Notes: generated by a model not told the origin, from the sequence alone. Positions 3,114 through 44,894 are shown, numbered from the stretch's first letter. The stretch: DNA of 64,000 nt from Macrostomum lignano (GCA_002269645.1 NIVC01000201.1:558001-622000), one strand, 5' to 3'. Translations and numbers: made by a program.

Positions 3114-3362
3114 GGGTACCTATATAGCTGCAAAAAGCAGCTGCACAGTAGTATTGTTGTCCTGATTACATGTCCCCCCACAAGAGGCTATACCAGACCA
3201 TTATTTATCAACTATTTGCAATCTAGCTGAGGAACTTCTCTCACTTCCCTAGTTAAATTGGTGTAGACGAATCAAGCAGCGGAATTACATGTACACATGC
3301 AACGAAGCCTTCGTACGTAGGATAAAATGAACAACGCAAGAAAAAAGTAACACCGATCAGGA

Positions 3363-3724
3363 TTAAAAAGCACCTCAAGTGCTGGCAGTTGCCAAACTGG
3401 CTAACTGTAGGTATAAAACATTTTGGAGCAAACAGCTCATTTCTAAGTTTGCATTAAAAAGCACCTCAAGTGCTGGCAGTTGCCAAACTGGCTAACTGTA
3501 GGTATAAAACATTTTGGAGCAAACAGCTCATTTCTAAGTTTGCATTAAAAAGCACCTCAAGTGCTGGCAGTTGCCAAACTGGCTAACTGTAGGTATAAAA
3601 CATTTTGGAGCAAACAGCTCATTTCTAAGTTTGCATTAAAAAGCACCTCAAGTGCTGGCAGTTGCCAAACTGGCTAACTGTAGGTATAAAACATTTTGGA
3701 GCAAACAGCTCATTTCTAAGTTTG
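3363..3724 (+). repeat. 91-bp tandem repeat, 4 near-identical copies
   Basis: The unit TTAAAAAGCACCTCAAGTGCTGGCAGTTGCC...TTCTAAGTTTGCA restarts at 3363, 3454, 3545 and 3636. Confidence 0.97.
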
Positions 3725-5131
3725 CGTTTAGTTTCTCTTGACATAAAAATTCTTCATACATCACACTGAAATTCAAACGGTACTACACTCTTCACCTCCG
3801 TGTAATATACATGTTCACCTACAGTCTACAAGTACATTTTAAAACGCACCAGAAAATCACAACAGATCAGACACCTAAAATAATTGCTAACGGAATGACA
3901 ATGTATTTGGGAAGCAAATAGAAGTTATTAATCTTCTCTGCAACACGCTTCCTGCACCGTACAAACCGTAGTCCAGTTAATTGAATGTAGGCGTCGGCAT
4001 TCGACCAGTGACAGTTGGAACAGACCCCGCCGCTGAACAATAGCTGCAAAAGTGAGCAAAAAGGCTTTTTAGAAAGCAATATACACTCCGTTTTAGCCTA
4101 CTGAACTCTAATTGCACTAACTAGCCTACTGAGTTAGTAGAAAGTTTAGCGCTAGTACAACGATTCTTAGACGATTTTTTCGCGACTCTTTTACGCTTCT
4201 ACAACTCACGTGACGCGCTTGTGATGCAAGAGTCACTTCTCCGTCGCATTTGACGCGTTTGAGTCGTTAAAAAGTCACAAGAGTCGCCCCAGACGCGCTA
4301 GAGTCACTAGAGAGTTGTTTGCAACGACTTTTTAGCGACTCTTGTCACGGTATCGTTTTCAACGGGCAGTCTAGAAGTTATTGGGTTCAGCTGTCAAAAA
4401 AACTAATTTTGGTCGAGTTCGAGAGGCACACGGGCTGTTTTAAAAATGAAGCGATGTGGTCAGAAATTAGTAGAACAAGTTAGTCATCCACAGTTTTAGC
4501 CAGTGGACTCTGCACCAAAATTATATTTGCTTGCTAAGCAATTTCAATAATGATATGCAATAAGTAAGTGGATTTGGCATTTCAAATTCATCTGATTTAT
4601 ATAGTGGCTATAAATGAAGTAAAAACAGACAAGAGCGCAAATGTACTCTTATTTACACAGACAAATTGCGGTAAAATTATATCAGCAACAATGTACATGC
4701 CGCAAAAACTAATATTAATTGGAATTGTGAGAAAGTCGGGCGAGTCTGTAAATATTGGTGAGGCATAAAATACCGCTTCGCTGATACTGCTAGTGGGAGG
4801 AATGTCTTGCAGTGTACAAAAAATCTAAAAAAGCCTGTATTTTTAGTGCTTGCGGTATGTAAAAAACTGTTGTACACGTATTCTTGTATAAGAAATATAT
4901 TCCACTTATGTACACAGGCTTTGGCGCAGTCGGGCATCCGCTTTGAAATTGAGCCAAATATTACCCTTACAACAGATTTGCCGCGTACTCCTCTCTCAAC
5001 GAAATGCTATCCGTGGGTGTGCAATACATTTGCATCACATGCAAGTAAACGCGGATTGCACCAATGTCCATGTTTGAACTATAAAGTCACATTACTTGTA
5101 CACGCTATCTGGAAGCTGGCAGAATTGGTAA

Positions 5132-6190
5132 TTACTGATGCTTCTTCATGTGCAGCGCCAGGTGGTCGGAGCGGGAGAACGCCCGACCGCACAGGCTGCA
5201 CGGGAACGGCCGGTCACCGGTGTGCTTCCGGTAGTGCCGGGTCAGCTCGTCCGACCGGGCGAAGCGCCAGCCGCAGCCGGGCCAGCCGCACAGGTACGGC
5301 TTTTCACCTGTGTGCGTCCGCAGGTGAGCCTTCAGGTGCGAACTCTTGCTGTAGGCCTTGGCACAGCTGGGCTCCGGGCAGATGTGCAGCTGCGGCTGCT
5401 GCTGCTGCTGAGTGCGCCTACCGGATGCCGTCGGCGTGGACTTCGGCTGTCTGGGTCTTCGGCACTGCTGCTGCTGTTGCTGCGGCTTCCGCTGCTGTTT
5501 CTGCTTCTCCTGCAGCCGAAGAATTTCCTCAGCCTGCTGGGTGCTTGGAGCGAACAGAGACACCGTGGCAGCCGCAGTCACCGAGGTCCGGCCGTTGATG
5601 ATGCACGTGCCGCTGGCTGGCTGGTGCTGGAACATGTAGCCAAACTGACGCTGCTGCTGCTGCTGCTGCGATTTCGACACCGAAGCTGCCGTTTGCTGCA
5701 CAGAGTGGTCGATGATGAAGTCCAGGTCCAGCAGGCTCAGGTCTGAGCTGTCCATTGAGCTCCTGTGCTCATCGTCATCGCAGTCTTCCGCTTTGACAGC
5801 TGAGAGCCAAGCCGCGGCTGAGTCTAGTTGAAAATTCTGGCAGCTGTGAGACAGCACACTGTCGCTGGCCGAGGCATCCAGGCCGCTGTGAACGGAGCCG
5901 GTGGACTCCGGACTGTGCCGGGAGCTGCCTCCGCTGAAGTAGTTCTCCAGAGATGACAGCGGTGACTGGGGCAGCTGCAAGTTCAAAAACAGTTCGGAAG
6001 AAGGCTAGTTAAAGTGGAAAGATCGTTGCCGATCAATCAAGTCACGTGTCACACTGCACGGCTATCAATTACTTACCGTTGTCGACGATCGACAATCGAA
6101 ATCGAACCAATCCGCGAATCCGTCGATGTCGCTGACGGTGACATTGGTCGCAGTTGGTGCTTCAACAGACTGACAGGCATCTAGTAGCAT
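5132..6190 (-). CDS. klf: Kruppel-like factor, KLF1/2/4 group (328 aa)
   Basis: Exons 6190-6077 and 6004-5132 (72-nt GTAAGT...CTAG intron, phase 0). Three C-terminal C2H2 fingers: [71 protein letters not shown]. Confidence 0.97.
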
Positions 6191-6330: not shown

Positions 6331-6453
6331 TTTTATGCAGAGCTCGCGCCCTGCTCCCATTGGCCAGCCGGGCTCGCCTGAGCCGTCGGCATTGCCAAAT
6401 ATGGCTCGGCCCGGGCTGACAAAGTGTGCTATTTTTAGAATCAGTATATAAGC
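6331..6453 (-). promoter_or_regulatory. klf proximal promoter module: GCTTATATAC, MEF2 site, CArG box, CCAAT, TATA-like
   Basis: On the minus strand: GCTTATATAC (6453-6444), CTAAAAATAG (MEF2 consensus, 6438-6429), CCATATTTGG (CArG, 6404-6395), CCAAT (6363-6359), CATAAAA (6337-6331). A second perfect MEF2 site, CTAAATTTAG, lies at 7162-7171. Confidence 0.7.
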
Positions 6454-7374
6454 TCTGCTCCGGCAGAGGGGGGAGCAGAGTGAGGCAGACGGAGCAGAGG
6501 GGACGGAGCGTGAGAGAGAGAGGGGCGCTCCTGCAGTGCATGCAGTGTTTGTAAATGTCAATGAAAGCCTGTTCGTGCCGAGTTTACCGAGACGGCATTC
6601 GTTTTAACACTGGACTGGGTAGAGAAAAGTGCGCCAGAAACTGCCATTTGTTTCAGCTGAGCTTTTAAAGCAAAAAGTGAATTTATTTGCAGCAATCAAA
6701 CAATGCTCAGTGCTAAAAATGTAGCACACTTTCCCACAGTCCACTTTTGCGTTACTTTTGTCCTGAGTTCTTCAATGTTCCAAAGCGTCAATGCAAAATG
6801 ATTTCAATTTCTAATTGTTTTCAAAAAAGTTTCCATCTAAATATTCACCAAGAAATACTTGAGCAGTGCAAGTGCAACCTTTTACAGTCGCGATAAATTT
6901 GCGTAGATATGCTATGGAAGAAGCAAAACGAATATAGATATGATTTCTTACCTTATTTCAACGCCGGGCCTCAGTGCCTGAGCTGGTTTCTGAGCGTACC
7001 AAATGCCAGCAATGCGCAGCAATGAGATAACGCTCCGTTTCGATGCAATTGGACGCAATTCTCAAGGAAAGCCTGTGGGAACGAGAGAGTTAGGCCCCGG
7101 GCGGGCACGTGCCCAGCGCTCGCAAGCACTCACGTACGCTGCTGGAATGCAAGTTTTGTTTCTAAATTTAGCCCTAATTCTTGTCTAGCGCACAATGGCC
7201 TACATGGAGTCGCTTGTGTCGCGGTTATAACTGAATTCTGTGCTAAGATTTCGGCGAGATCGGTCACAATTGGCTACTCTCAGTAGGTGTGAGAGAGTAA
7301 GAAATCATCTGTATATTTGACGGGTTTTAGCACATTCGATCTTCATGAAATTCTGCAAGTCAATGTCGATCACC

Positions 7375-9161: not shown

Positions 9162-10579
9162 TCAAGACTCGAGCAGGTTGATGAGCGGCAACTGGGAGAA
9201 GTCGTTGCCAGGATGTCGCTGGTGGAAGCGGAGGAGCTCGCGGTCGCAGAGCAGCCTCGCACCGCTGACGGAGGCCCTGATGGCCAGGCACTCGTACGAC
9301 AGGTCGGGCAGCGGGCTGTTCGGGTCGGCCGACATCTCCACGATTTTCCTCACCAGCTGGTCGTGATCCACCTGTGTGAGAGAGAGATTGGCACGCGATG
9401 TTGCATGCGTTCATTTAAAGAATTCCTCCCCGAGTCTCCGAGCCAGCGAACGTAAAAATTAGCTCGGAAAAAGTGCGTGGGTGGAGTTTTGATTTGCGTC
9501 AGCAACTGCGGCTGTGCACCCCTGTGCTATCTGTTGAGCGACCTCTGGGCGCCAGGTGCAGTTATCGTGAAGTCTCGCTTGAAAAGCGCTGATTACTAGC
9601 ATTTTCTGTCTGTCCGCACCCCCCCCCCCTAATGCACTCTTTCATTCAAGCAGGTCGCTGCGTTATCAAACACATGACGCTTTTGCTTCACCTGCAGATC
9701 TTGTTTCGCCAATTCGAAATCTTGAAATCTTGTCAATTTGAATACCGAAACCCACTGAGTAACCCGCAGCTCACCTTGATCATGCGAACTCCGTTCTCGC
9801 AGCAGGCGGACACCAGCAGGGAGAAGAAGGCCCTGTGCAGCGGGTTGTTCCACAGATTCTCGGGCAGGATGCAGAACAGCAATGACTGCGGGCTGAAATT
9901 GGTAGCAGGTTCAACCAGATTAAGGCAATGAAGTTTGATGTCAGGATGATTGCAATAAATTTAGGTTTAAGTTCACAAGCATCCGGTCCAAGGTTTGCAT
10001 CGATTTTTTAATCGTCATCAAATCCTGATAGAGTCCGAAGTGACCCCGACCAAATCTGGTTGAAACTTGCAATCAAAGTCCTGATAGGTTCTGTCAGGAT
10101 TCTATAGTCTATTGCCGAATGATAAACCAAGTGGTGTCGAACACCAGTTCAGGTTCTCATTGAGGTTGCTCAGATTGATGGAGTTTGCAACCGGGTATCA
10201 AAGCGAGTACCAGAGCCAGATGATTGTGAACATCTACCCAATCATGTAGGCGCAAACTTACTCGTTCTGAACGGCGTCGATGACGTGCTTGAAGCCGCCG
10301 ATCAAGCGGCCGTCCAAGTTGGCCCGCGCGAGACTCTGCTGCATGAACGCGTTGACGTCGCTTGAGTGAGCCACGCCGTCGTTCACCATCGAGCTGCAGA
10401 GCATTTGAAAGCGAACTCGAATATTAAATTCAGTTCGAGCTTGCATTTAAAAAGCTCTCCTAATAATCGGTGTCGCGGGACTTTTACCTCGCTACAAATG
10501 GTGGCACTTACCCAGATCTGTCGGGCCACAGGTAGAACATGTTGCTGGCTGTATCCGCGCCGCCGGCGGCCTCGCCCAT
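9162..10579 (-). CDS. gadd45: GADD45 family protein (L7Ae/L30e/S12e/Gadd45 fold), about 175 aa
   Basis: Exons 10579-10512, 10393-10262, 9892-9775, 9371-9162, all GT-AG and in frame. ...VQNDPQSLLFCILPE...FFSLLVSACCENGVRMIKV...PLINLLES parallels GADD45 NVDPDNVVLCLL...FTLIQAFCCENDINILRV...PVINLPER. The start codon is uncertain (in-frame ATGs at 10630, 10579, 10540). Confidence 0.9.
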
Positions 10580-11509: not shown

Positions 11510-12869
11510 TCACTAGCTCTAAATAGTGCAGGCAAGGTCGCAGGGAAAGAGGAATGTCTACGTGCACGCGGATATCAGGCATGCCAGATCCGTTTGAGGT
11601 CAAATATTTTGGCCAATTTGTGCTTTAAGCAGCACCCTTCCCCTGTTCTTAGCGCTTTTTTCTGTCTTTCTCGCGCCACGCTCAATTTCCTGAACGAACA
11701 CAAGCGCACCACTCGATGCTTAATGCTCGTAGCCGAAAGTTCACATTTCTGGTTTAATAAACAAGCAGCATTGTTTTTGTTATTCCGCTGTTTTATGTTT
11801 TTCATTATTATTCAATGTGGCTACCTTTTGAAGATTGGCCCCTTGACTATAGTTAAGATATTAAGGATGTTTAAGAGAGTTTAAAAGTGTTTAAATGTCG
11901 TTTAACAATGTCCCCGATGTTGTTCGGATTTTAACAACTTGATGACTTAACTCGAGTGAGCTTTGATGGAACTTATCAAGTGTACCCTATGTCACAACAA
12001 AATTAAACTAATCATCTGAGTTTCACACGGGACTCAATAGAGGACATAACAGTTCTCAATGCCCTCATTCCGATTGAAAGCCACTAGGCTGACCCACCCG
12101 GATATGAGTCCATCTGCATCCGCGTTTGAGTGAACTTTTTGGGGCTTCATATCGAGTGGACATAGCAGGCGCCACTGTTGCTCATACAAAGCGGTCAAAT
12201 ATTTACCTAAGAAGGTTCGTGTACTGAGCTGAGCACGGTACGAGCCCAAGTATACTCAAAGTCCTTGGCTGATCCCAGCTTCCGTACAAGCAGGATATTC
12301 GAGTTCTGACGGACTTCCATTGTATTGACTTTTAAAATTGATCTGCTGAATGGCACTCCGAACTCAAGTTGCTGCTTCCTTTTCCACAAATAATTTTACA
12401 ATCATATAAAAGCGTGAGCAGGACCGCAGAAACTTGCAGAATTCAATCGGGCCCTGGGAAAATAACAACAAGAGCGAGCGAGCGTAACAGTGTAGACAAA
12501 AGCGGTGTAAACCCGACTCCGTCACTGACTTCTAAATTAGGCAATATGCGCGTAAAATTTTACTTTTGCTCGATTCCATATATGGAAGTGGACAGCTGAT
12601 GCTAAAAATAGCATTGAAAACAAAACAAGTCTCGAGATATCTGACGCCGCTAACTACATTCTAAGCATGGCGAGAACTTCGCTTCGCTTTACTTTATTTT
12701 CGACCGAAAGTAGACGAAATATGTCTGAGTTTTCACAGCATTGAGAAATGCGACTTCATTTTAAATTGATACGAATTTTCAATGTCAGAAATTAGGTAGG
12801 CTCTGGGATAAAATTATGTTTTAGGCAGTTTTGATTATAGGAAACGTTAGCTCAACAACATTATGGTAG

Positions 12870-13678
12870 ACAGGGGTTATTGGCGTCACTCAATCAACGG
12901 ACAGGGATTATTGACGTCACTCCATCAAATGACCTTGGGTTTAGTGACGTCACTCCATCAAATGACCTTGGGTTTAGTGACGCCACTCCATCAAATGACA
13001 TTGGGTTTAGTGATGCCACTCCATCAAATGACCTGGGTTTAGTGACGCTACTCCATCAAATGACCTGGGTTTAGTGACGCCACTCCATCAAATGACCTGG
13101 GTTTAGTGACGCCACTCCATCAAATGACCTGGGTTTAGTGATGCCACTCCATCAAATGACCTGGGTTTAGTGATGCCATTCCATCAAATGACCTGGGTTT
13201 AGTGATGCCATTCCACCAAATGACCTGGGTTTAGTGATGCCACTCCATCAAATGACCTGGGTTTAGTGATGCCATTCCATCAAATGACCTGGGTTTAGTG
13301 ATGCCATTCCACCAAATGACCTGGGTTTAGTGATGCCATTCTGTCAAATGACCTTGGGTTTAGTGACGCCACTCCATAAAATGACCTTGGTTTAGTGACG
13401 CCACTCCATCAAATGACCTTGGGTTTAGTGATGCCACTCCATCAAATGACCTCGATTTAGTGACGCCACTCCATCAAATGACCTTGGTTTAGTGATGCCA
13501 CTCCATCAAATGACCTGGGTTTAGTGACGCCACTCCATCAGATGACCTTGGTTTAGTGACGCCACTCCATCAAATGACCTTGGGTTTAGTGATGCCACTC
13601 CATCAAATGACCTCGATTTAGTGACGCCACTCCATCAAATGACCTTGGTTTAGTGACGCCACTCCATCAAATGACCCC
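12870..13678 (+). repeat. 32-33-bp minisatellite (GGGTTTAGTGACGCCACTCCATCAAATGACCT), about 24 copies
   Basis: Direct periodicity. The earliest units grade from a GGACAGGGG-type variant. Confidence 0.97.
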
Positions 13679-14224: not shown

Positions 14225-17200
14225 TCAAGCGGCCTCCTGGTCCTGCAGCGGCTCCTTGTGGCAGTAGGCGTTCTTCCAGATCTCCGAAAGACAGACGGTG
14301 GAGTGAAACCGGAAGAAGATGATCATGGGCAGGGTGGTGTACTTGATTATTTTCCAGCCCTTGGCGCCGAAATAATTCTCGTAGAAGTTGACGGAGATTC
14401 GCCGCTTGGATTCGAAAATGGCGGCCACCCACATGGCGAGGTTGGCGACCAGCAGCGCGATGATGATGCCCCTGGCCGGCTTCCGGCCCTGCAGGTAGAG
14501 CCGGCGGCTCAGCTTCCGGCGAGAGAACTGCGCGATGAGGAAGGTCTGGGAAAGCGCCTGGGCGCCGTCCAGCAGCGATTTGAGGCCGTTGAGCTTCGTG
14601 ACGACCCCGCTGCGGCCAGTGCCGAACAGGCAGTGGTCCGAGCCCTGCTGGGCCGTGTGCTCGTCCATCAGGCAGGAGGCGGAGGACACGACGACAAAGA
14701 GGTTGTAGCAGAGCAGGCCGGACAGGCCCACGAGCAGCAGCTTGCCGTCCAGGTCTTCCCGGCCCCTGGTTTTGTCTACTGACAGGCTGCTGAGTGATCT
14801 GCGGATTGGAGAAGCGGAAGTGGAGGATTACCTAAAGCGGGTCGCTTTCACAAGATCAAGATTTCATAAGCTCGGTATCGACGAATTCTTTCAAGTTTTG
14901 AGCTTGCGGAAGTAACAAACAAGAGTTCTGGACGGTATGAAGTTTCGAGCTTATGAAACTCCTCTCTCAATAAAACTCACTGCTTACCTACTTATTTCTC
15001 TTATAACAGTAGGATGTCTAGAGCGTCTCAGACTGAATTCTAAGTGTCAACATTACGAGATATTATTGTCTGCGCGCTTCTGCCGTTGAGCGGAATGGGC
15101 GTCCGCGCCTTCCCGCTGTGTCCCCTCCGGCACAGCCCTGCAGCGCTTCTGCAGTAGTGGCTTGGGGTTTCTCTCGCGAAATAAAGACCTGGCGCAAGGT
15201 GCCACTCCATCAAAGTTCGTTCGTTATTGAAAGTGTCTGGACTAAAAAAACTTTTCTTTGTTCATTAGTTCGCCCCACTAGTGCGAGCCTCCTACTCCCA
15301 AGGCACTCCCCAAGGCCTTGTTTTTACTCAAACCTGCAGGCGCCAGCACAGCAGAGTGCAGCGGTGATGAGCAGCACGGAGCACTCGGCCGCCAGCACGG
15401 CGATGGTGTAGGCGTCCCGCCTGTCCTTGTCGGGCTTCGGCAGCAGCACCAGCGTGGCCAGCGGTACCACGATCAGGATGACGATGAGCAGGCCAAAGAA
15501 CAGGCCCTTGTGCGACTTGTGACACGTGGTGAACATCTTGAAGGATCGGACGGCCTGCGGCTGGCGTCGGTGCAGGCTCAACCGATTTGAGCAGGGGGCG
15601 CCAACTTTGCGGAAGAGTTTAAAGCAGACGGCGGCTGAGATGAGGCCGTATTCTACCGCGCACGGATACAGGAAGGGGCTGAGCGCGTGCGAAGAGCCGG
15701 CGTAGGCGGCCAGGGTGAGGGCGCACTCTGTGGAGAGGACATTGTCCGAACAAGCATCTTATTTCTCTGATTCCCATTGAGATCCATTCTCTCTCCTCTC
15801 TCCTCCCCGAGGCTCTCTTCTCGTTGCGAGTGACCTCAGATAGAGAAATTACTGCCGACTAGAGATACGAGTATCTTTCCACCCAGCCTGTTTGCTGTGC
15901 TGTGCAAGCAATAGCAAGACTCAGTCATCTTTAGTTTCACCTTTTTGCTGGCTCAATAACTTGCATTACTCGTTAAACACCCTTCCCCAGAATAAGTCAA
16001 CGCTTTGTCTATAGAAAACACTTTACTGATAATTATGAAGTCTCATATTAAATGAATAATTAAGAAGTCTTATCCTCTGCAGCACCTGTCTGCGACGAAG
16101 AACGCAGGACTGACCGGTTCTGCCAGTCGCGACCATCTCCGCCGACGGAGCCGTTGCCAGCAGCAACCGCATCAGGCTGCTGCGTCACGCTGAGAGCCAT
16201 CTTCACCTCGTAGATGACCGCTTTCATCCAGATGCACAGGTTGGTGACAACCAGGTGGGCCAGAGCGAAGCGCACAGCGCTGGTGTACACTGTCACGACA
16301 ACCTGCGAATTTTGGGGTGAATAAAAGTTCAGAGAGGTATAACATTGTTCCACCAGTACAAGCACAGGGGATTTTGTCACGTCATCAAAGGACAGGTAAC
16401 GTGACGTGACGTGACGGGTTAGTGACGTCACTCCATCAAAGGACAGGGGGTTAGTGATATCACTCCATCAAAGGACAGGGGGCTAGTGACGTCACTTGCA
16501 CAAGTGTTGCAGAAGTTTTTCATCAGCACTTAAAAATCAACGTTTGTACGTTTAAGTAATATGCGACGATTTGCATGAACAATTTAGCAAATCAACCACA
16601 ATACCACCATATCCAAATTTCACCAGCGCATCACCCCGGCTTCTCAAATTAGCCTCCAATCAAGGACAACTTCATAATAGATGCCCAATGCAGCCAGGTA
16701 GGCTTAAGTCGTCCTTGCCTCCCACCAGCTACTCACCCGATGATTCTTAAACAGATGAAACGTCTGCAGCAGGATGAACAGCAGGTGCACCAGCAGCTGC
16801 AGCTGCCACATCACACTGCGACAGTCGGCGCTGCTCGGCTGTTCAACCGTGTCCGCCAGCTTGAAGGCATCGTGGATCATCACGCCGAAGCCGAAGACTG
16901 CGAGGTGCGGAGGAGATAAGGACAAAGCGAGGAAATTTCAACGTTTTGATTTGGCAGTGCGGGTCAGTCAAAGGAGATCGAATGACTGCCCCAGAACGAG
17001 CATACATGTACTTGATTTACCAGGCACGGCCCAGCCTGCTTCTTCAGCCGTGAATGCACAGCCTTTACTCGAAACAGGCTCGCCTACCTCGGCCCCAACC
17101 TGGATCTCTCTGACGCTTTCAGGCCTAAGGGCTACCGTGCGAGCGACCATTCACGACTGGACCTACCGGACCGCAACAAACGCTGCTCTTGATCGCTAGG

Positions 17201-20200
17201 GGTTGGCAGAATGGGCAGCGTGACACCTCCCAAGCTGCACCCGAACGAACCAGAGCCCCCTGCTGCAAAAGCATAGCCACATCGATAGCCCGTCTACTCT
17301 GCCGGTCCTTGAGGTATTTAATACTTGAGATTTCTTAGAAATTGAGACTTCGGTCGAAAGACTGCATCACTAGCTAGCTCAGGACACTCACTGATTGCCC
17401 CCAGCCGCAGGTAAAGGTTTATGCCTTCCACCGACACCCAGACGGCAGGCTGCGGTTCGTAGCCACCGCCAGTCGCCTCCGCCGCCTCCGCCGCCACCGC
17501 CGCCGGCTGACCAGTGGCGACGGCGTCAAAGCGAAGCGGCTTCAATTTCTGTTCCCTCCGCAGTCGGCCGTCACTGTTGTTACTGCTGCTGCCAGCTGCT
17601 GCTGCAAGGAAAGACGGGTGTCGCTTATCTTACTGCTTTCAGTAGGAAATTCTGTATGTCATTCTTAGACTCGCATTAGATAGTAACTTTTATACTTTTT
17701 TCAATATAGAAACACGATTTCTTCCATGTTGATATAACAATGATAATTAATTACACCTGCCCTACTGGCCAGATGTGCAACCGACAGCTCAGCCGCAGCT
17801 ATTGCGCGGCGCATCTGAAGGCTGCGTACGGCTGTTCAGTTCAAGGACTGGGGGGTGGGGGGGTCGCCACACACACCCTCAATTACCCCAGCTAATGCTG
17901 GTGCCCATTTTACAGATGGGTGAACTGAAGCAATGCAGAGTTAAGCGTCTTGCTCAAGGACACAAATTGTTCCGAGTGGGGTCGAGAATCGAACCTCCGA
18001 CCTTTCAGTCATTAGTCCGACGCTCTGACCACTAGGCTACAACCCCCTATATTGCTGTATATCCATATTGAATGCATATCAAATACTCTTTTTTGTTATA
18101 AACATGGCAGTTTCACTGCTCGACCGATTTCATTTCAAAAAAGATTTTGCACCGATTGTCTGAATCCTAACAATTCAGAATGGCACAGTTTAAATTTTGT
18201 TGAATTTACAAACTTTTAGAGCTGTGCGCACCCTGCTGAGACCTGCAGTGGTGGTTGCCCTGCCGAGGCCCCAGGGCTGCCAGGGGCATAGCCTCCTCCC
18301 CGTCTGGCACGGGCAGATGCGCCGTCAGCGCCACGCGAGCCTCCGCGTCTCCCTCTTCACTGCTACCGCTGCTGCCGCTGCAACCGTCGGCCTTCTGGAG
18401 CGTCGCGTCGGTGTTCAACGCGCGGCGCGGCTCCTTGAACCGGTAGATCACCAGGCTGATGAAGGCCAAGAAGACCAAGCCGGCGAAATGCATGTACAGG
18501 TAGAAAATCTGTGGGGTGCAATGGGGGCGCAACTGGGATATTTGTGCTCGGTTCACAGGTGCCAAGGGCTGTGGCTTTCGCTCCTGTCTCTTGGTGGGCG
18601 CCCCTGTCTCTTGGTGGGCGCCCCTGTCTCTTGGCGGGCGTCCCTGTCTCTGGTTGGGCACCTCTGTCTCTTGGTGGGCACCTCTGTCTCTTGGTGGGCA
18701 CCTCTGTCTCTTGGTGGGCGCCCCTGTCTCTTGGTGGGCACCTCTGTCTCTTGGTGGGCGCCCCTGTCTCTTGGTGGGCACCTCTGTCTCTTGGTGGATA
18801 CCCCTGTCTCTTGGTGGTCGCCCCTGTCTCTGCGTTGGCGCCCTTGTCTCTTGGTGGGCGCCCTTGTCTCTTGGTGGGCACCCCTGTCTCTTGGTGGATA
18901 CCCCTGTCTCTTGGTGGGCACCTCTGTCTCTTGGTGGGCGCCCCTGTCTCTTGGTGGGCGCCCCTGTCTCTTGATCGGCACCCCTGTCTCTGGGTGGCAC
19001 CTCTGTCTCTTGGTGGGCACCTCTGTCTCTTGGTGGGCGCCCCTGTCTCGTGGTGAGCGACGAGGACGCGAGTAGACCCACCGTCTCCGTGCCTTCGGGT
19101 TCAAGCTTAAAGAACTGAAATCCGCTATTTTAATGATTTGCCTACTAATAGTAGTTGTGAGATCCTGCGCACGTGACTAAAAATAAGATTCGAACTAATC
19201 GCGATGCCGAATTCTTCTCCGTCAGCTGGTCTAACAACCCCCGAGGCAGCAGCCCCAAAAATCAATTTTTAAGTCGCTACTATTTAGCAGCAGTGAGGCA
19301 GTCAAGCTACTAATAGTAGGTCAATTTTTGCAGATTTTCAGTTCTCAATCAAAACAAACCCCATCCTTCGCCAAGTAACGAAATGTCAATTGTCAAAGTG
19401 AAACCGGTTTTTGCTGCGGGAAGCCAGTGAGTGCACTGTGTGCGACTGAATCCGATTTCCGCTTTACTTTGTAATTTTAGCAGAAGCAGGAAAAAATTTC
19501 CGGATTATCAAAAATGTTGAAGAGAAGAAAGTTTGACTAACTAGACTAACCAGGTGGGAACAACCGTCTCAGCGATGCTCTGATAATCCATAAAAGTCCG
19601 CGATATGAGCAAATAAAACCCGAGGCTAATCCAGAGAGCTGCTCTGCTGTTCCGTGCCCGACTCAGGTCTCCAGCCCTCCCGGCGCTGTCCCATCTCACA
19701 ACGACGCTAATAAGTACACACTCGATGCCCCTCGAGCCCAGAGAGATTCGCTCACCTTCCCACTTGGGTGTCATTACCTCCGCTCGAGTCCTATCTTACA
19801 TCTCCCATCTTAGAGGAATCTGCCCCGATGTTTCCCTGGCCTGGCCACTCATCAAGTTCTCATCCTGCTCCCGCTGCAACTCAGACTTCGAGCTCCGGTC
19901 TTGCGCTGCCTCGAATTCGGAGACTGTTTTTGCACTGTTGTGAGCAACTGTTGCGGAACCGCAGTTGAGTATCTGTGAGATGGAGGATGAAGAGAGTTCC
20001 AGTTCGGAAGTGGGGGATGCAGAGAGTTCCAATTCGGAAGTGGATGATGAAGAGAGTTCCAGTTCGGAAGTGGGGGATGAAGAGAGTTCCAGTTTGGAAT
20101 TGGGGGATGAAGAGAGTTCCAGTTCGGAATTGGGGGATGAAGAGAGTTCCAGTTCGGAAGTGGGGGATGAAGAGAGTTCCAGTTCGGAAGTGGGGGATGA

Positions 20201-23200
20201 AGAGAGTTCCAGTTTGGAAGTGGATGATGAAGAGAGTTCCAGTTCGGAAGTGGGGGATGAAGAGAGTTCCAGTTCGGAAGTGGGTGTTGCAGAGAGTTCC
20301 AATTCGGAAGTGGGGGATGAAGAGAGTTCCAGTTCGGAAGTGGGTGTTGCAGAGAGTTCCAATTCGGAAGTGGATGATGAAGAGAGTTCCAGTTTGGAAG
20401 TGGATGATGAAGAGAGTTCCAGTTCGGAAGTGGGGGATGAAGAGAGTTCCAGTTCGGAAGTGGGGGATGAAGAGAGTTCCAGTTTGGAAGTGGAGGATTC
20501 GGCAACACATTCAGGAAACGTTCGGGAAACATAGGATGAGGAGAGTTCCGATTGGGAAGTTGGAAAGAAAAGAGAGTTCCAGATGGGAAGTGAAGTCAAA
20601 TTATAATTGCAAGGAAATCCACCCAAAATCATGAAAAAATTGAAGTCTAATATGTATATACATACATACTAGTACATAGAAAATTTGAGATTTATTTATA
20701 TAGATTTCTAATCAATTTTCGACAATAATGTTTGGGCAAAAAAGTTCTGAGGAAGAGAGGATTGAGTAGAGGAGAGAGGCGAACGCGCGAGTGAGTGATC
20801 TGGAAGCGCATCGTTACGAAAAATATCAGCAATAGAAAAACGAAAAAAAGAGCACATCGAGCACAGAAATTGCTCTGTCCTGTGAAAGACATCTGAGCAG
20901 CTTCAGATTTACTACAGTATTCAGCTTCTGCTCTGGAACTGGAATGCCAGGGACACCTAGAGAGACAGAATCTGGAATGGAATGCCAGGGACTCCTAGAG
21001 AGACAGAGCATCTGGAACGGAATACCAGGGACTCCTAGAGAGACAGAGCATCTGGAACGGAATACCAGGGACTCCTAGAGAGACAGAGCATCTGGAACAG
21101 AATACCAGGGACTCCTAGAGAGACAGAGCATCTGGAACAGAATGCCAGGGACTCCTAGAGAGACAGAGCATCTGGAACGGAATACCAGGGACTCCTAGAG
21201 AGACAGAGCATCTGGAACAGAATGCCAGGGACTCCTAGAGAGACAGAGCATCTGGAACAGAATGCCAGGGACTCCTAGAGAGACAGAGCATCTGGAACGG
21301 AATACCAGGGACTCCTAGAGAGACAGAGCATCTGGAACAGAATACCAGGGACTCCTAGAGAGACAGAGCATCTGGAACAGAATACCAGGGACTCCTAGAG
21401 AGACAGAGCATCTGGAACGGAATACCAGGGACTCCTAGAGACAGAGCATCTGGAACAAAATGCCAGGGACTCCTAGAGAGACAGAGCATCTGGAACGGAA
21501 TACCAGGGACTCCTAGAGACAGAGAATCTGGAACGGAATGCCAGGGACTCCTAGAGACAGAGAATCTGGAACGGGATACCAGGGACTCCTAGAGACAGAG
21601 CATCTGGAACGGACTGCCAGGGACTCCTAGAGAGACAGAGCATCTGGAACGGAATACCAGGGACTCCTAGAGACAGAGCATCTGGAACGGAATGCCAGGG
21701 ACTCCTAGAGAGACAGAGCATCTGGAACGGAATGCCAGGGACTCCTAGAGAGACAGAGCATCTGGAACGGAATGCCAGGGACTCCTAGAGAGACAGTCTA
21801 GAACAGAATACCAGGGACTCCTATAGATACAAAGCATCTGGAATGGAATTAAAGGGCTAATTAGATAAGAATACTGTTATTTCCAGGAGTTGGAAAAGCA
21901 GAAAAGCTTGAAATCAGCAGGAGAAAAAAGAGCACATCGAGCACAGAAATTGCTCTCTCCTGGGAGAAACATTTGAGCAGCTGCAGATTCGCTATATGAT
22001 TATTCGAGTTGCCGGGAGTAAAATCCCCCGTTCTGCTTCTGTCCCAGCCAGGGCAAGGGGCATATCGATCCTTTTCAGAACCAGAAAAAGTCTGGGCCTG
22101 GTCGATTAAGAGACTTCAGGTCTTCCCTGCCGCTGTGAGCTCCTGCCGGACCCAATTCTCGTCTCGGTAATGTTGGCCATCCTTTTCGCTGCAATATTAA
22201 GTACTAGTGCAGTAGTAGCGCGGGGCTTAAGGCAGGACTGAGTTCCATTAAATTCCGAGCTGAGTAATTAAAAGGATTACATGTAATTACTACTTGAGCA
22301 GATCTTTGTAGATCAGGGAGTGAGTAGTGGCATCAGGGAGGGAGTAGTGGCATCAGGGAGGGAGTGGTGGCATCAGGGAGGGAGTAGTGGCATCAGGGAG
22401 GGAGTAGTGGCATCAGGGAGGGAGTAGTGGCATCAGGGAGGGAGTAGTGGCATCAGGGAGGGAGTAGTGGCATCAGGGAGGCAGTAGTGGCATCAGGGAG
22501 GGAGTAGTGGCATCAGGGAGGGAGTAGTGGCATCAGGGAGGGAGTAGTGGCATCAGGGAGGGAGTAGTGGCATCAGGGAGGGAGTAGTGGCATCAGGGAG
22601 GCAGTAGTGGCATCAGGGAGGGAGTAGTGGCATCAGGGAGGCAGTAGTGGCATCAGGGAGGGAGTGGTGGCATCAGGGAGGCAGTAGTGGCATCATGGAG
22701 GGGGAGCTCTAGTCCATCTACAGGACACAATCCATGAAAGAGAGTCGCTTCGATTTCAGCTCAATGTCATTTGCAATCAGTTCACCAGCCCAGTTGTCAG
22801 CCCCCATTGCTCTCCTACGAGTAATCGGATTCGAGAGTCAGCCCAGCAGAGCAGACACTGGATAAGAGCGAGTCAACGTCAACGATCACAGTCAACTTAA
22901 ATTAACTCAATCAACTCCAGCTGTTTAGGGAAACAGCTTTGAGTCCAGCTGATTCGGTTAAAAACGTGATAAATCCAATGAATAATCCTAGGGTTAGATT
23001 GCGAGTACACGTGCAAAAGTACCCGTACACCTCAGGGGAAAGCCAGTACAGGGACAGCTAGAGAAACAGGGAATCGGGATGCCAAGGACTCCTAGACAAA
23101 CAAAGAATCTGGAACGGGATGACAAGGACTCCTAGAGAGACAGAGCATCTGGAACGGAATACCAGGGACTCCTAGAGAGACAGAGCATCTGGAACAGAAT

Positions 23201-26200
23201 ACCAGGGACTCCTAGAGAGACAGAGCATCTGGAACAGAATACCAGGGACTCCTAGAGAGACAGAGCATCTGGAACGGAATACCAGGGACTCCTAGAGAGA
23301 CAGAGCATCTGGAACGGACTGCCAGGGACTCCTGAGAGACAGAGCATCTGGAACAGAATGCCAGGGACTCCTAGAGAGACAGAGCATCTGGAACAGAATA
23401 CCAGGGACTCCTAGAGAGACAGAGCATCTGGAACGGAATACCAGGGACTCCTAGAGAGACAGAGCATCTGGAACAGAATACCAGGGACTCCTAGAGAGAC
23501 AGAGCATCTGGAACGGAATACCAGGGACTCCTAGAGAGACAGAGCATCTGGAACAGAATGCCAGGGACTCCTAGAGAGACAGAGCATCTGGAACAGAATA
23601 CCAGGGACTCCTAGAGAGACAGAGCATCTGGAACGGAATACCAGGGACTCCTAGAGAGACAGAGCATCTGGAACAGAATACCAGGGACTCCTAGAGAGAC
23701 AGAGCATCTGGAACAGAATACCAGGGACTCCTAGAGAGACAGAGCATCTGGAACGGAATACCAGGGACTCCTAGAGAGACAGAGCATCTGGAACAGAATA
23801 CCAGGGACTCCTAGAGAGACAGAGCATCTGGAACGGAATACCAGGGACTCCTAGAGAGACAGAGCATCTGGAACGGACTGCCAGGGACTCCTAGAGAGAC
23901 AGAGCATCTGGAACAGAATACCAGGGACTCCTAGAGAGACAGAGCATCTGGAACAGAATACCAGGGACTCCTAGAGAGACAGAGCATCTGGAAAGGAATA
24001 CCAGGGACTCCTAGAGAGACAGAGCATCTGGAACGGAATACCAGGGACTCCTAGAGAGACACAGCATCTGGAACGGAATACCAGGGACTCCTAGAGAGAC
24101 AGAGCATCTGGAACAGAATACCAGGGACTCCTAGAGAGACAGAGCATCTGGAACGGAATACCAGGGACTCCTAGAGAGACAGAGCATCTGGAACGGAATA
24201 CCAGGGACTCCTAGAGAGACAGAGCATCTGGAACAGAATACCAGGGACTCCTAGAGAGACAGAGCATCTGGAACAGAATACCAGGGACTCCTAGAGAGAC
24301 AGAGCATCTGGAACGGAATACCAGGGACTCCTAGAGAGACAGAGCATCTGGAACAGAATACCAGAAACTCCTAGAGAGACAGAGCATCTGGAACGGAATA
24401 CCAGGGACTCCTAGAGAGACAGAGCATCTGGAACGGACTGCCAGGGACTCCTAGAGAGACAGAGCATCTGGAACAGAATACCAGGGACTCCTAGAGAGAC
24501 AGAGCATCTGGAACAGAATACCAGGGACTCCTAGAGAGACAGAGCATCTGGAAAGGAATACCAGGGACTCCTAGAGAGACAGAGCATCTGGAACGGAATA
24601 CCAGGGACTCCTAGAGAGACACAGCATCTGGAACGGAATACCAGGGACTCCTAGAGAGACAGAGCATCTGGAACAGAATGCCAGGGACTCCTAGAGAGAC
24701 AGAGCATCTGGAACAGAATACCAGGGACTCCTAGAGAGACAGAGCATCTGGAACGGAATACCAGGGACTCCTAGAGAGACAGAGCATCTGGAAAGGAATA
24801 CCAGGGACTCCTAGAGAGACAGAGCATCTGGAACGGAATACTAGGGACTCCTAGAGAGACAGAGCATCTGGAACAGAATGCCAGGGACTCCTAGAGAGAC
24901 AGAGCATCTGGAACAGAATGCCAGGGACTCCTAGAGAGACAGAGCATCTGGAACAGAATACCAGGGACTCCTAGAGAGACAGAGCATCTGGAACGGAATA
25001 CCAGGGACTCCTAGAGAGACAGAGCATCTGGAACAGAATACCAGGGACTCCTAGAGAGACAGAGCATCTGGAACAGAATACCAGGGACTCCTAGAGAGAC
25101 AGAGCATCTGGAACGGAATACCAGGGACTCCTAGAGAGACAGAGCATCTGGAACAGAATACCAGGGACTCCTAGAGAGACAGAGCATCTGGAACGGAATA
25201 CCAGGGACTCCTAGAGAGACAGAGCATCTGGAACGGACTGCCAGGGACTCCTAGAGAGACAGAGCATCTGGAACAGAATACCAGGGACTCCTAGAGAGAC
25301 AGAGCATCTGGAACAGAATACCAGGGACTCCTAGAGAGACAGAGCATCTGGAAAGGAATACCAGGGACTCCTAGAGAGACAGAGCATCTGGAACGGAATA
25401 CCAGGGACTCCTAGAGAGACAGAGCATCTGGAACGGAATACCAGGGACTCCTAGAGAGACAGAGCATCTGGAACAGAATGCCAGGGACTCCTAGAGAGAC
25501 AGAGCATCTGGAACAGAATACCAGGGACTCCTAGAGAGACAGAGCATCTGGAACGGAATACCAGGGACTCCTAGAGAGACAGAGCATCTGGAACAGAATA
25601 CCAGGGACTCCTAGAGAGACAGAGCATCTGGAACGGAATACTAGGGACTCCTAGAGAGACAGAGCATCTGGAACAGAATGCCAGGGACTCCTAGAGAGAC
25701 AGAGCATCTGGAACAGAATGCCAGGGACTCCTAGAGAGACAGAGCCTCTGGAACGGATCCTAGGAACAGATCAGAATATTGCTATTTCTAGAAGTTGGAA
25801 ATTCAGGAAAGCTCGCTGCTGTTTCCAATCCAGAATCCTAGGTTTAGGCGTCCTAGTCTTAGTTGCTCTGCTAGACTCAGGGTTACCTCCTAACCGGGCA
25901 TCCGGGAAGCTCACAAATATATTTTCGCATTAAAATCCCACAGTTTAGCTGCCTCGCCAGCTTTTCTACAAGAGAAGAACAGCACAGCGCCCTGATTTAT
26001 GCCGCCTGCCGCAACCGGAGGCGGAACCGGAAGCAGGCGATCGAATCGGACGACTCACCTGGTCGTAAGTCTGATGTCGGAGGGTGCCGCTGGCCAGCCC
26101 GTCACTGACGGGGATCACCACACCCAGCATGGTGAGGCTGATACTGTACAGAATGATGAGGGAGCTCAGCACATGACGCCGTGGGCTGCCCGCACCTCCG

Positions 26201-29200
26201 TCCTCGGCGTCCTCACCGACACCGTCGGCAGCTGGCCCGAGCGGCTTCTCAATCAAGCAGTCGGAGCCGGGCCGGGCGCTGAGGTGTGGGGGGGGGGGTT
26301 TAATACGCCTGAAAAATGTACTACTCTGTAAACTGAATATCCTGCACATGACACACGTCAGTTGTTTAATAGCTTTGCAAATATTTATATTATTCAATTC
26401 GTTAAACTTCCCATTATTTCAACACCCCATTCCTTAGAAATCCCATTCCTTAGATATCCCATGCCTTAAGCATCCCATTCCGTAAACATCCCAAAAAGAC
26501 ATTGATAGGAGTCAGTTGCATATCAAGTATTGATATCAAGTCTCCGTGCTGATAGCCTAATTAACATCTCATTAAGGCATTTACAGCTACCAAGCAAGCT
26601 CAAGGGCTCGGCCTACTCGTATAAACAGTTTCAGAAACACCTGTCAGACAAATGGAATTGAGGATGAGGAAGCGAATCCCCAGGCAGACTGTGCCCCCCC
26701 CCCCCCAGCTAATCAATGCAGCCTGGCAGAGCGCGCTTTCCATTTGGCTCTCCGTCATTGAATTTTGGTGCGGCCCAGCCAAGCGTATGATGAGGAAGAG
26801 GCTGGGCCAGCGCCAGGTTCCCACGGTGCAGCCTCTTGAATGTTTCATGACTGCCCGCCCCCTTCACCGATCGGGCCGGGGCAGCTGCTGCTGTCCTTAA
26901 AAAAATTTGGGCGCCAAGCGGCGGATGCGGGGCGTCCAGCCAGCCTCTGAGCTGCATCGCGAGAGAGAGAGAGAGAGAGAGAGAAGCGCAGTCCGACAGC
27001 CAAGGTCTTTTGTCTCCGGTGTGAATGCCCCATGCATCCCATTGTGCTGGCCTGAGAGTTTCATGTTTCTCCACCTCTCCGCCTGTTTCCGTGGGCGCAC
27101 ACACACGACAGTCACAGAAGGTGCACACTGCGGAGTCTGAGCAGTGTGCTCAGGGCGCATGGCTGCTGGCCTTCTGGCTGGCTGCGGGCTGACTTTTGCG
27201 TGTGATCTATGCGCAGTCCGAAGTTCTGCGGGGTCAAAGTGCACCCAAGGACTTCTAGACTAGCTAGTCTAGAAGTCCTTGAGTGCACCCCCTCCAGTCT
27301 GAGCTAACTCGAACGAGCAAGTCCTGGGGTGCAGTCTGTGTGCTTCCCACTCGCATTCCGGGTGGCACGAGAGCAAATCTAATTGAGATGCTTCGAATCT
27401 TGCGGCCCCAACAGTTTGTTTTATCTTTGCCGTTGCGAGAGTTGCAGATCTCTCTGGCGCACAAGCTCACTTGGCTCGGAGTAGACAGGCTCAGATGAAG
27501 GATCGATGGAGGCTGGCATTCAGCTTTAGCATTCAGCCAGCACTGCCGATTCTCCCAGCCATTCCCCAGATTGACTGCCTGTGTGCTCGGCACTTCAAGG
27601 ACTTGGGGCAGGCCGCGCGGATTAAAGTAGGGATTTCAGTTCCGCAGCCTGGGATTTTATGACGCTGAGGAAATCGGGAACAGAAGCGGTTTCGAAGGAG
27701 GGTTTGGAGCAGAGTGGCGCCGAAACCGTTCTCTTATGACATATGGTTACCGGGCTCGAATCCCGATGCGGCGAAATTTCAATTTAGGTTAGATAAAAAA
27801 CCATGGCGTGTCAAGGATTGCCAGTTTAGGAGTGAGGGTTGCCACTCTGAGAGTGAGGGTTGCCACTTTAACAACCAGGAGCCCCTTAAAAGAGCTAATC
27901 ATCAGCCATCGGGAGTTCGGTTTGAATCAGTTTAGCTCCACATCAATCTGTAGGCATCAAAGCCAGCAAGTTGGCTTTGTCGGCTTGCTTTTTGACCGGC
28001 AGCGACTGATCGATCAGCCACCTGAAAGCCAATCAAGCAACTGCCTGCTTTAATCAGCCTGTCGTCAGGCAGTGCACACAGGAAACTGTTGAATTGCACG
28101 CGACAGTCTGAATTTTAATTGAATTGCCTATTAAACACGAAAGCAGGCAAAAATTCTGATTTGCTTGGATCACTAACATGGAAAGGCATCACACATCTGT
28201 ATGATGACCGTGCCTGACTGGAGATAACCCTGCTTAGTACTCAATGCCCCCCCCCAATAACCGGCAAGACCCTGTCTGACAATAAATGACCCCCAATTAC
28301 CCAAAATGACCGGCAATGACTCTGTCTAACACCAAATGACCCCCAATGACCGGCAATGACCCTATCTGACACCACATGATCTCCAACGACCGACAATGAC
28401 CCTGTCTAACACTCAATGACCCTGTCTAACACTAAATGACCCCAGTGACCGGCAATGACCCTGTCTAACACCAAATGACCCCCAGTGACCGACAATGACT
28501 CTGTCTAACACCAAATGACCCCAGTGACCGGTAATGACCCCGTCTAACACCAAATGACCCAAAATGACCGGCAATGACCCTGTCTAACACCAAATGACCC
28601 CCAGTGACCGACAATGACCCTGTCTAACACTAAATGACCCCAGTGACCGACAATGACCCTGTCTAACACCAAATGACCCCAGTGACCGGCAATGACCCTG
28701 TCTAACACCAAATGACCCCAGTGACCGGCAATGACTCTGTCTAACACCAAATGACCCCTAATGACCGACAATGGCCCTATCTGACACCACATGATCTCCA
28801 ACGACCGACAATGACCCTGTCTAACACTAAATGACCCCAGTGACCGACAATGACCCTGTCTAACACCAAATGACCCCAGTGACCGGCAATGACCCTGTCT
28901 AACACCAAATGACCCCTAATGACCGACAATGGCCCTATCTGACACCACATGATCTCCAACGACCGACAATGACTCTGTCTAACACCAAATGACCCAAAAT
29001 GACCGGCAATGACCCTATCTAACACCGAATGACCCCAATGACCGGCAATGATTCTATCTAACACCAAATGACCCAAAATGACCGACAATGACTCTGTCTA
29101 ACACCAAATGACCCCAGTGACCGGCAATAACTCTGTCTAACATCAAATGACCCAAAATGACCGGCAATGACCCTATCTAACACTAACTGATCCCCAACGA

Positions 29201-29625
29201 CCGAAAATGACCCTATCTAAGACCAAATGACCCAAAATGACCGGAAATGACCCTATCTAACACCAAATGACCCAAAATGACCGGCAATGACCCTATCTAA
29301 CACCAAATGACCCAAAATGACCGGCAATGACCCTATCTAACACCAACTGATCCCCAATGACCGGCAATGACCCTATCTAACACTAACTGATCCCCAACGA
29401 CCGACAATGACCCTATCTAAGACCAAATGACCCAAAATGACCGGCAATGACCCTATCTAACACCAAATAACCCAAAATGACCGGCAATGACCCTATCTAA
29501 CACCAACTGATCCCCAAGACTCAAATGTCTAGCAAGCAACTCCCAGTTGAATCAGAGAAAAGCTCAACTCACAGTCTGTCATTCAAGTCGGACTCAGCAG
29601 GCGCCAGCTCCTGCGGCAGCGTCAT
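14225..29625 (-). CDS. otop: Otopetrin family proton channel (701 aa)
   Basis: Exons 29625-29573, 26278-26059, 18508-18232, 17601-17392, 16897-16737, 16302-16086, 15727-15334, 14798-14225 (2106 nt, phases consistent). Motifs: FYLYMH, LYLRLGAIIFGFG, FALAHLVVTNLCIW, SPFLYPCAVEYGLI, CHKSHKGLFFG, PMIIFFRFHSTVCLSEIWK. Exon 1 and the two GTGC donors are less certain. Confidence 0.93.
16375..16497 (+). repeat. Short array of the same 32-bp family as 12870-13678
   Basis: Units read gggttagtgacgtcactccatcaaaggacagg. Confidence 0.85.
17790..18047 (-). mobile_element. tRNA-derived SINE with a CORE (MIR-like) domain, in otopetrin intron 3
   Basis: On the minus strand: A box TAGCCTAGTGG (18039-18029), B box GGTTCGATTC (17995-17986), then GTGTCCTTGAGCAAGACGCTTAACTCT...TTCACCCATCTGTAAAATGGG, resembling the CORE consensus CCTTGGGCAAGTCACTTAAC...CTCATCTGTAAAATGGG. 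The 3' end is approximate. Confidence 0.85.
18582..19050 (+). repeat. 20-bp minisatellite (CCTGTCTCTTGGTGGGCGCC)
   Basis: Direct periodicity; it generates several spurious ORFs. Confidence 0.97.
19985..20585 (+). repeat. 30-bp minisatellite (GAGAGTTCCAGTTCGGAAGTGGGGGATGAA)
   Basis: Direct periodicity, about 17-20 copies with degenerate ends. Confidence 0.97.
20935..21845 (+). repeat. 40-bp minisatellite, array 1 (CCAGGGACTCCTAGAGAGACAGAGCATCTGGAACAGAATA)
   Basis: Direct periodicity, about 22 copies. Confidence 0.98.
22320..22700 (+). repeat. 20-bp minisatellite (GGAGTAGTGGCATCAGGGAG)
   Basis: Exact 20-bp periodicity, about 19 copies. Confidence 0.98.
23065..25757 (+). repeat. 40-bp minisatellite, array 2 (same unit as array 1), about 67 copies
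   Basis: Direct periodicity. Confidence 0.98.
28245..29515 (+). repeat. 39-40-bp minisatellite (CCAAATGACCCCAGTGACCGGCAATGACCCTGTCTAACA)
   Basis: Direct periodicity, with a gradient of variant units along the array. Confidence 0.97.

Positions 29626-36179: not shown

Positions 36180-44894
<8,715 letters not shown>

Follow-up and report, generated by a model that had tools for sequence, protein, structure and literature searches.

The proximal promoter of a KLF2/4-type gene (klf) of the flatworm Macrostomum lignano probably carries an ancestral bilaterian MEF2-responsive module, homologous to the proximal MEF2 element of vertebrate KLF2. The gene lies in a 64,000-nucleotide (nt) stretch of the M. 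lignano genome (GCA_002269645.1 NIVC01000201.1:558001-622000; hereafter, the window), and the module is a 25-base composite, GCTTATATAC-TGATT-CTAAAAATAG, located on the gene-sense strand 239–263 nt 5′ of the klf ATG. It recurs at matching genes in four phyla, where its sequence, spacing, orientation and position can be read directly. To our knowledge, cis-regulatory sequences traceable across the protostome–deuterostome split are very few, and short promoter modules with an experimentally validated vertebrate reader are almost absent among them. The vertebrate element itself is well known; of interest here are its evolutionary depth and the conservation of a partner sequence that would constitute an inverted TATA box. 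In the searchable literature, outside of which lie subscription journals, we found no report of the KLF2 MEF2 element in an invertebrate and no promoter string beyond the 10-base pair (bp) MEF2 core.

A sequence-only reading of this DNA had described the parts of the klf promoter and likened them to the promoter of mammalian KLF2. The 10-mer, the TGATT spacer, the MEF2 site, a CArG box, a CCAAT box and a TATA-like site are all present as it described them, on the minus (gene-sense) strand of the window (Table 1), and the mammalian sequence that it gave is exact in marmot KLF2 and one base off in hamster. The promoter segment has no second copy within the window and does not lie in a repeat or transposon. 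Elsewhere in the same assembly (GCA_002269645.1), a paralogous M. lignano locus is collinear with klf over the whole 9-kilobase (kb) region at 93–94% identity and retains the entire module and also a second MEF2 site further upstream; its CArG box reads CCATATTAGG, a T to A change that preserves CC-W6-GG.

The vertebrate element was taken from genomic DNA of marmot, hamster, frog, gar and shark. Marmot KLF2 carries GCTTATATAC-CGCGG-CTAAATTTAG (contiguously, GCTTATATACCGCGGCTAAATTTAG; in longer context, GCCGGCTTATATACCGCGGCTAAATTTAGGCTG) 195 nt before its ATG and hamster KLF2 carries GCTTTTATAC-CGCGG-CTAAATTTAG, while frog, gar klf2a and shark klf2a have GGTTTATATAG-TGCTG-CTAAATTTAG, GCTTTATATAC-TGGGG-CTAAATTTAG and GCTTTATATAC-GGCTG-CTATATTTAG, respectively. 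The region of the vertebrate element is reported as required for induction by shear stress, statins and serum and for repression by TNF-alpha, and the −138/−111 region has been described as a tripartite palindrome. Mutation of the MEF2 core ctaAATTtag strongly lowers the activity of a −215 mouse Klf2 promoter reporter (PMC4108324). In vertebrate endothelium, laminar shear signals to the KLF2 promoter via MEK5, ERK5 and MEF2, and TNF-alpha represses KLF2 via p65 and HDAC4/5 inhibition of MEF2 (PMC5807683, a review), an effect that maps to −221/−114 of the promoter (PMC5713352).

The comparison with vertebrate and invertebrate klf promoters that the sequence-only reading had proposed recovers the module in frog, gar, shark, a hemichordate and a mollusc. 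Defined as TTATATAC/G, 5 bp and a MEF2 consensus in the gene sense, it was found 5′ of KLF2-type genes in marmot, hamster, frog, gar, shark, the acorn worm Saccoglossus kowalevskii (a hemichordate) and the snail Candidula unifasciata. In Saccoglossus the module occurs twice, at 464 and 181 nt upstream of the ATG. Copy a is CTTATATAC-CCATT-CTAAAATTAG, with a perfect CArG box, CCAAATATGG, at +107; copy b reads GCTTATATAG-GAG-CTAAAAATAG and is followed by ATTGG and GCAAATATGG. The snail promoter contains CTTATATAC-CCCAT-CTAATATTAG 248 nt before the ATG, then CAGCCAAT and TATAAG. From the MEF2 site to the ATG there are 248 nt in both Macrostomum and Candidula, 142–317 nt in vertebrates and 181 and 464 nt in Saccoglossus. 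The conservation from an invertebrate to mammals that had been inferred is thus supported, the orientation, the 5-bp spacing and the approximate distance from the ATG being alike at KLF2-type genes. This support is for conservation of the module and does not extend to the mechanical or wound response circuit that the sequence-only reading had inferred from it.

Ungapped alignment of ten sequences leaves TATA, CTA and TAG invariant in all ten. The 9-mer CTTATATAC within the flatworm 10-mer (or TTTATATAC/G) stands at the matching offset from the MEF2 site in the nine other promoter sequences, and the spacer is 5 bp long in 9 of the 10, the remaining one being Saccoglossus copy b with 3 bp. Counting from the MEF2 site, Macrostomum has its CCAAT box at +75; in the other species CCAAT or ATTGG comes at +14 (snail), +22 (Saccoglossus copy b) and +54 to +67 (gar, frog and shark). 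The flatworm's CATAAAA, at +101, has gene-sense TATA-like counterparts at +46 in the snail and at +82 to +97 in gar, tetrapods and rodents; in tetrapods the counterpart is TATAAG or TATAAA at +89 to +97, hamster and marmot both having TATAAG 89–90 nt 3′ of the MEF2 site. The CArG box, which had been described together with these parts, is present in the flatworm promoter and forms no part of the vertebrate module, being common only to Saccoglossus, where copy b has a 9/10 match, GCAAATATGG, at +33 (+34 from the MEF2 site start in Macrostomum); the snail promoter examined has none. Two of the three CArG boxes in the Macrostomum window lie no more than 35 bp from a CTAAAAATAG site, and at the Saccoglossus locus neither of the two CArG boxes is more than 112 bp away from MEF2 sites 5′ of the gene. 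In the same Saccoglossus promoter (9490–9700), TGAGTCA, a perfect AP-1 site, precedes module copy a by about 25 nt, and a perfect cyclic AMP response element (CRE), TGACGTCA, falls between copies a and b. AP-1 and CRE sites are typical of stimulus-responsive immediate-early promoters.

Taken singly, the individual motifs are unremarkable. The window holds 2 occurrences of the 10-mer with at most one mismatch (2.5 expected), 3 CArG boxes (4.2 expected) and 16 MEF2 consensus sites (4.0 expected), the last clustered in its AT-rich parts. Because MEF2 consensus sites are frequent in AT-rich stretches, the second MEF2 site upstream of klf, which the sequence-only reading had listed beside the module, is at chance level when taken alone and is unproven; the sequence is there, with no support beyond its presence and its retention in the paralogue. 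For the strict composite CTTATATAC-N5-YTAWWWWTAR, the expectation per 500-nt promoter is 2.3e-7 at flatworm composition and 2e-7 to 1.4e-6 across species. A relaxed composite appeared in 0 of 200,000 simulated promoters (first-order Markov) for the flatworm and in 0–2 of 200,000 per species overall. A 28-nt weight matrix trained on five vertebrate KLF2 promoters only, and scanned on both strands, ranks the klf element first of about 128,000 positions in the 64-kb window (18.4 bits versus 13.7 for the runner-up) and the Saccoglossus element first in 21.7 kb. On account of this rank, of the rarity of the composite and, decisively, of the recurrence in two other invertebrate phyla, the likeness is more than coincidence, and chance resemblance is statistically excluded. 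A scan of metagenome contigs for CTTATATAC-N5-CTAWWWWTAG returned at least 120 matches on AT-rich contigs (median GC 33%); the KLF zinc finger was absent by tblastn from the contigs of these matches, and no new taxa were gained. With none near a KLF gene, we treat them as chance background.

The klf gene occupies two exons on the minus strand of the window, with its ATG at 6190, and encodes three C-terminal C2H2 fingers. A GT..AG intron (GTAAGT...TTGCAG) splices the exon end at 6077 to the open reading frame (ORF) 5132..5974, giving a product of 318 amino acids. Its top database match is M. lignano BOX15_Mlig021744g1 (96% identity, full length), which is a paralogue or homeologue of the klf in the window; the named matches after it are of KLF2, KLF1 and KLF4 types. 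Outside the fingers, the flatworm protein has SLENYF near the N-terminus and an LLDLDFI-type motif further in, where the Saccoglossus protein has DVETFLY and DLLDLDFILNN and the Candidula protein NMENFLY and DLLDLDFILSN. LDVDFIL or LDLEFIL occurs in a crinoid protein and in shark and gar KLF2, and VLDFIL or VLDFILS in mammalian KLF2; an N-terminal ENYF/ETFL-type motif together with LLDLDFI(L/I) is common to flatworm, Saccoglossus, Candidula, shark KLF2 and gar KLF2. Since the fingers and both the N-terminal and LLDLDFI-type motifs are shared with KLF2 of other species, assignment of the flatworm gene to the KLF2/4 group is supported, and its orthology likewise, short of proof.

Read on the opposite strand, the 9-mer gives a consensus TATA box that faces away from the gene. 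An antisense TATAWAWR is kept in 10 of the 10 sequences at −14 to −7 from the MEF2 site (−12 in Saccoglossus copy b), as TATATAAG in Macrostomum, snail, Saccoglossus and marmot, as TATATAAA in shark, gar and frog, and as TATAAAAG in hamster, one substitution from TATATAAG that preserves the consensus. The conserved CTT flank is then the AAG end of the inverted TATA box. We compared the 9-mer by eye with factor consensus sequences: as a second MEF2 site, or as an SRF/CArG, forkhead, PAR-bZIP or TEAD site, it does not fit, and among the consensuses tried the antisense TATA box alone fits all ten sequences. Roughly 100–110 bp separate the inverted TATA from the TATA-like site of the sense strand in flatworm and tetrapods, a spacing typical of divergent start-site pairs. 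For klf itself we favour a start site near 6300, given that the 140 nt from CATAAAA to the start codon contain no ATG and that the CCAAT box precedes CATAAAA by 26 nt; upstream ATGs occur at 6392 and 6360, between the MEF2 site and CATAAAA. M. lignano trans-splices some of its mRNAs.

MEF2 is a MADS-box protein with a conserved YTA(A/T)4TAR specificity, regulated by MAP kinases and class IIa HDACs. In the mechanism that we propose, a MEF2 dimer would bind CTAAAAATAG and activate klf from a start downstream of CCAAT and CATAAAA, a step that we consider likely. By analogy with vertebrates, the element might also render klf signal-responsive, with MAP kinases phosphorylating MEF2 and class IIa HDACs repressing it, although we rate this at somewhat below an even chance; flow, stretch and wounding would be among the conceivable triggers. 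SRF and NF-Y, acting at the CArG and CCAAT boxes, probably add input in flatworm and Saccoglossus, which would make for a promoter like that of an immediate-early gene. More doubtfully, the 9-mer could, as an inverted TATA, bind TBP/TFIID or another AT-binding partner and possibly act as an antisense core promoter, leaving MEF2 between divergent core promoters. We lean, with less assurance than for homology of the module, towards the wider proposal that inverted TATA box, 6 bp and MEF2 site together form an urbilaterian element that the KLF2/4 genes of flatworm, mollusc, hemichordate and vertebrates would have kept for over half a billion years, with MEF2 acting between divergent core promoters and antisense initiation as part of its working.

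That one flatworm promoter and one mammalian sequence should be alike by pure chance is hardly credible: single motifs are not enriched in the window, and AT-rich collections of very large size do contain chance copies of the composite (the metagenome matches, at least 120 and none beside a KLF gene), but only 2e-7 are expected per promoter, the element is the top match of the vertebrate-only matrix in 64 kb, and it recurs independently at the orthologous position in Saccoglossus and Candidula. Convergence, with the same grammar arising independently before KLF genes in several phyla through a shared protein complex that requires it, would accord with the fast turnover of short binding sites in promoters, with the module being missing at four loci (below), and with spacers whose letters are not conserved and whose length falls to 3 bp in Saccoglossus copy b. 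We nevertheless consider it unlikely. Flatworm, snail, Saccoglossus copy a and marmot have exactly the same 9-mer, CTTATATAC; the elements agree in orientation and spacer length, lie at comparable distances from the ATG and have CCAAT after them, all at orthologous genes; and with a composite of about 19 specified bases expected at some 1e-7 to 1e-6 per promoter and present in at least three lineages, retention is much more parsimonious. Even if convergent, the element would be functionally constrained.

Two further alternatives accept the sequence and differ on its role. TATATA could be klf's own core TATA box, with a start about 30 nt 3′ of it, in which case the MEF2-like and CArG sequences would be nonregulatory transcribed leader. 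TBP can bind TATATA either way round and CATAAAA is a weak TATA match, but in 10 of 10 sequences it is the opposite strand that matches the TATA consensus better, and the promoter continues with CCAAT (within GGCCAATGG) after 75 nt and a TATA-like site after 101 nt, a layout resembling that of snail, gar and frog. Such a leader would also hold the upstream ATGs at 6392 and 6360, whereas the 140 nt after CATAAAA hold none. Hamster and marmot have their sense TATAAG 89–90 nt past the MEF2 site, and the MEF2 site of mouse has been validated as an upstream element (PMC4108324), all of which makes a core-promoter role for TATATA improbable. Alternatively, the module might mainly serve an antisense or divergent non-coding RNA, since the plus strand reads as a MEF2 site directly 5′ of a consensus TATA, and antisense transcription would be the conserved function. 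The antisense TATAWAWR in 10 of 10 sequences, including the compensating change in hamster, and its distance of about 100–110 bp from the sense TATA-like site in flatworm and tetrapods fit such a role. Against it, no gene or ORF is called upstream on that strand, either in the window or at the annotated paralogue, and the mouse MEF2 site is needed for sense Klf2 reporter activity (PMC4108324); we regard it as not very likely as the main function, and it is compatible with, rather than exclusive of, an ancestral MEF2-responsive module that drives klf.

Several observations weigh against such an ancestral module. What all phyla have in common is only the 25-bp core plus CCAAT and TATA: the downstream block CATCCTGRACGTGTTTCC, present in shark, gar, frog and mammals, is missing downstream of the MEF2 site in Macrostomum, snail and Saccoglossus, and the vertebrate KLF2 promoters examined have no CArG box. 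Nor is conservation universal. The module was not found in 4 kb upstream of a KLF2-named lamprey gene, whose protein also lacks the N-terminal motifs, in 10 kb upstream of a KLF4-named gene of Schistosoma japonicum or of a Limulus ‘KLF5’, or in 10 kb upstream of KLF2 in the spider Nephila and the 84-kb gene itself (27.6% GC); no ecdysozoan or non-bilaterian positive emerged among the twelve eukaryotic loci looked up. Non-detection at the lamprey, Schistosoma, Limulus and Nephila loci may reflect either repeated loss or gene models that miss the real promoter. A look-alike string in lamprey, at 9279 and 2 kb 3′ of the gene, does not precede a KLF ORF, and we put it down to chance. Retention of the module in a paralogue that is 93–94% identical has no statistical power, and orthology of the genes is argued from protein motifs rather than from phylogeny. 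The flatworm start site is placed solely by CATAAAA and the lack of upstream ATGs after it. A TATA-type partner as reader of the 9-mer is putative.

Table 1 Features of the klf locus in the window (positions counted from its first base; −, strand of klf)
Feature	Position	Strand	Remarks
klf exon 1	6190..6077	−	ATG 6190, 38 codons, then GTAAGT; start agrees with the NCBI gene call of the paralogue
klf exon 2	5974..5132	−	LLDLDFI activation-domain motif and three C2H2 zinc fingers
TATA-like site CATAAAA	6337..6331	−	Gene orientation; probable core promoter
CCAAT box within GGCCAATGG	6363..6359	−	Candidate NF-Y site
CArG box CCATATTTGG	6404..6395	−	Candidate SRF site
MEF2 consensus CTAAAAATAG (YTA-W4-TAR)	6438..6429	−	Motif match; starts 248 nt before ATG
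5-bp spacer TGATT	6443..6439	−	Length conserved, letters not
10-mer GCTTATATAC with conserved 9-mer CTTATATAC	6453..6444	−	TATATAAG on + strand at 6445–6452, consensus TATA box facing away from klf
Second MEF2 consensus, palindrome CTAAATTTAG	7162..7171	.	972–981 nt 5′ of ATG; no TATA-like partner adjoining
Distal cluster: CArG CCATATATGG, E-box CAGCTG, MEF2 CTAAAAATAG	12576..12611	+	Three sites in 36 bp, 6.2 kb 5′ of klf

The distal cluster lies about 2 kb 5′ of a 191-amino acid gene call without a Pfam domain and is kept in the paralogue (1175–1215), its CArG box with a W-to-W change. Flanks included, the distal and proximal MEF2 sites are identical at 17 of 18 nt (GAT(T/G)CTAAAAATAGCA). By its site composition, the cluster has the look of an SRF/bHLH/MEF2 enhancer of muscle type. 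Directly upstream of it is a minisatellite with a 32-bp unit in about 32 copies (12869–13676) and 2.5 more copies 3 kb off at 16416–16496; the units contain CRE-like palindromes, TGACGTCA or TGACGCCA. The window as a whole is unusually rich in long minisatellite arrays with units of 16–40 bp and up to 67 copies (18579–31067, for example 23070–25757; 37625–38270; 40817–43903), which strongly skew the composition of the strands and give rise to long spurious ORFs in several reading frames. On the minus strand, the ORF 38305–39441 encodes the end of a protein kinase domain and a UBA domain of SIK/MARK type (Pfam Pkinase 8e-11, UBA_SIK3 4.5e-8), separated by a 21-bp in-frame minisatellite, (GRFVQSQ)n, at 38955–39165. 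SIK-type kinases regulate class IIa HDACs and hence MEF2; its nearness is probably coincidental. Retroelement remnants occupy the AT-rich part at 51609–52883 and 55332–56183, both on the minus strand, one with a reverse transcriptase (RT; RVT_1, 5e-32) and the other with RT/RNase H (RT_RNaseH_2, 3e-25). At 3362–3725, 3′ of klf, there are four 100% identical tandem copies of a 91-bp unit, either a very recent duplication or an assembly feature.

The vertebrate link from MEF2 to KLF2/4 is known from endothelium and lymphocytes, and the MEF2-to-KLF2 axis holds a central place in flow sensing by endothelium, the action of statins, T-cell quiescence and inflammation. If the module is ancestral, this link would be older than blood vessels and adaptive immunity and would have begun as a signal-responsive switch; if flatworm and vertebrate elements are homologous, the vertebrate axis would represent redeployment of a far older circuit. 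M. lignano is genetically tractable, with transgenesis and RNA interference available, which opens the function of the ancestral circuit to study. For the vertebrate KLF2 promoter, the conserved inverted TATA supplies a concrete hypothesis, namely a site for TBP/TFIID or another partner, or an antisense start.

The closest known system is the proximal MEF2 element of vertebrate KLF2 (LKLF). In it as in the flatworm module, 5 bp separate a (G)CTTATATAC 9/10-mer from a consensus MEF2 site, the whole lying in the gene sense roughly 150–300 nt before the ATG of a KLF2-type gene, with a CCAAT-type box and then a TATA-like site downstream. They differ in the MEF2 core (CTAAAAATAG in flatworm, CTAAATTTAG in vertebrates), in the letters of the spacer, and in the CArG box that the flatworm has and the block CATCCTGRACGTGTTTCC that it lacks, the flatworm element being known from sequence alone. 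MEF2- and SRF-dependent immediate-early promoters, such as those of c-jun and Nur77 with their MEF2 sites and of c-fos and egr-1 with their CArG boxes/serum response elements, are rapidly induced by MAP kinases in vertebrates. Like them, the klf promoter has MADS-box sites (MEF2, CArG) near the core promoter of a transcription-factor gene; unlike them, its MEF2 site is paired with a putative inverted TATA. We know of no description of a fixed partnership between MEF2 and an inverted TATA as a feature of immediate-early promoters. Muscle-type CArG/E-box/MEF2 enhancers share all three of their site types with the distal cluster, whereas the proximal module is without an E-box. With the bilaterian-wide conserved regulatory elements, such as the few enhancers reported to be common to vertebrates and invertebrates, finally, the flatworm module would share the retention of non-coding sequence at orthologous loci across the protostome–deuterostome split; it differs from them in being a promoter-proximal composite of about 25 bp, found through its motif grammar and not as a long alignable block beside a developmental gene.

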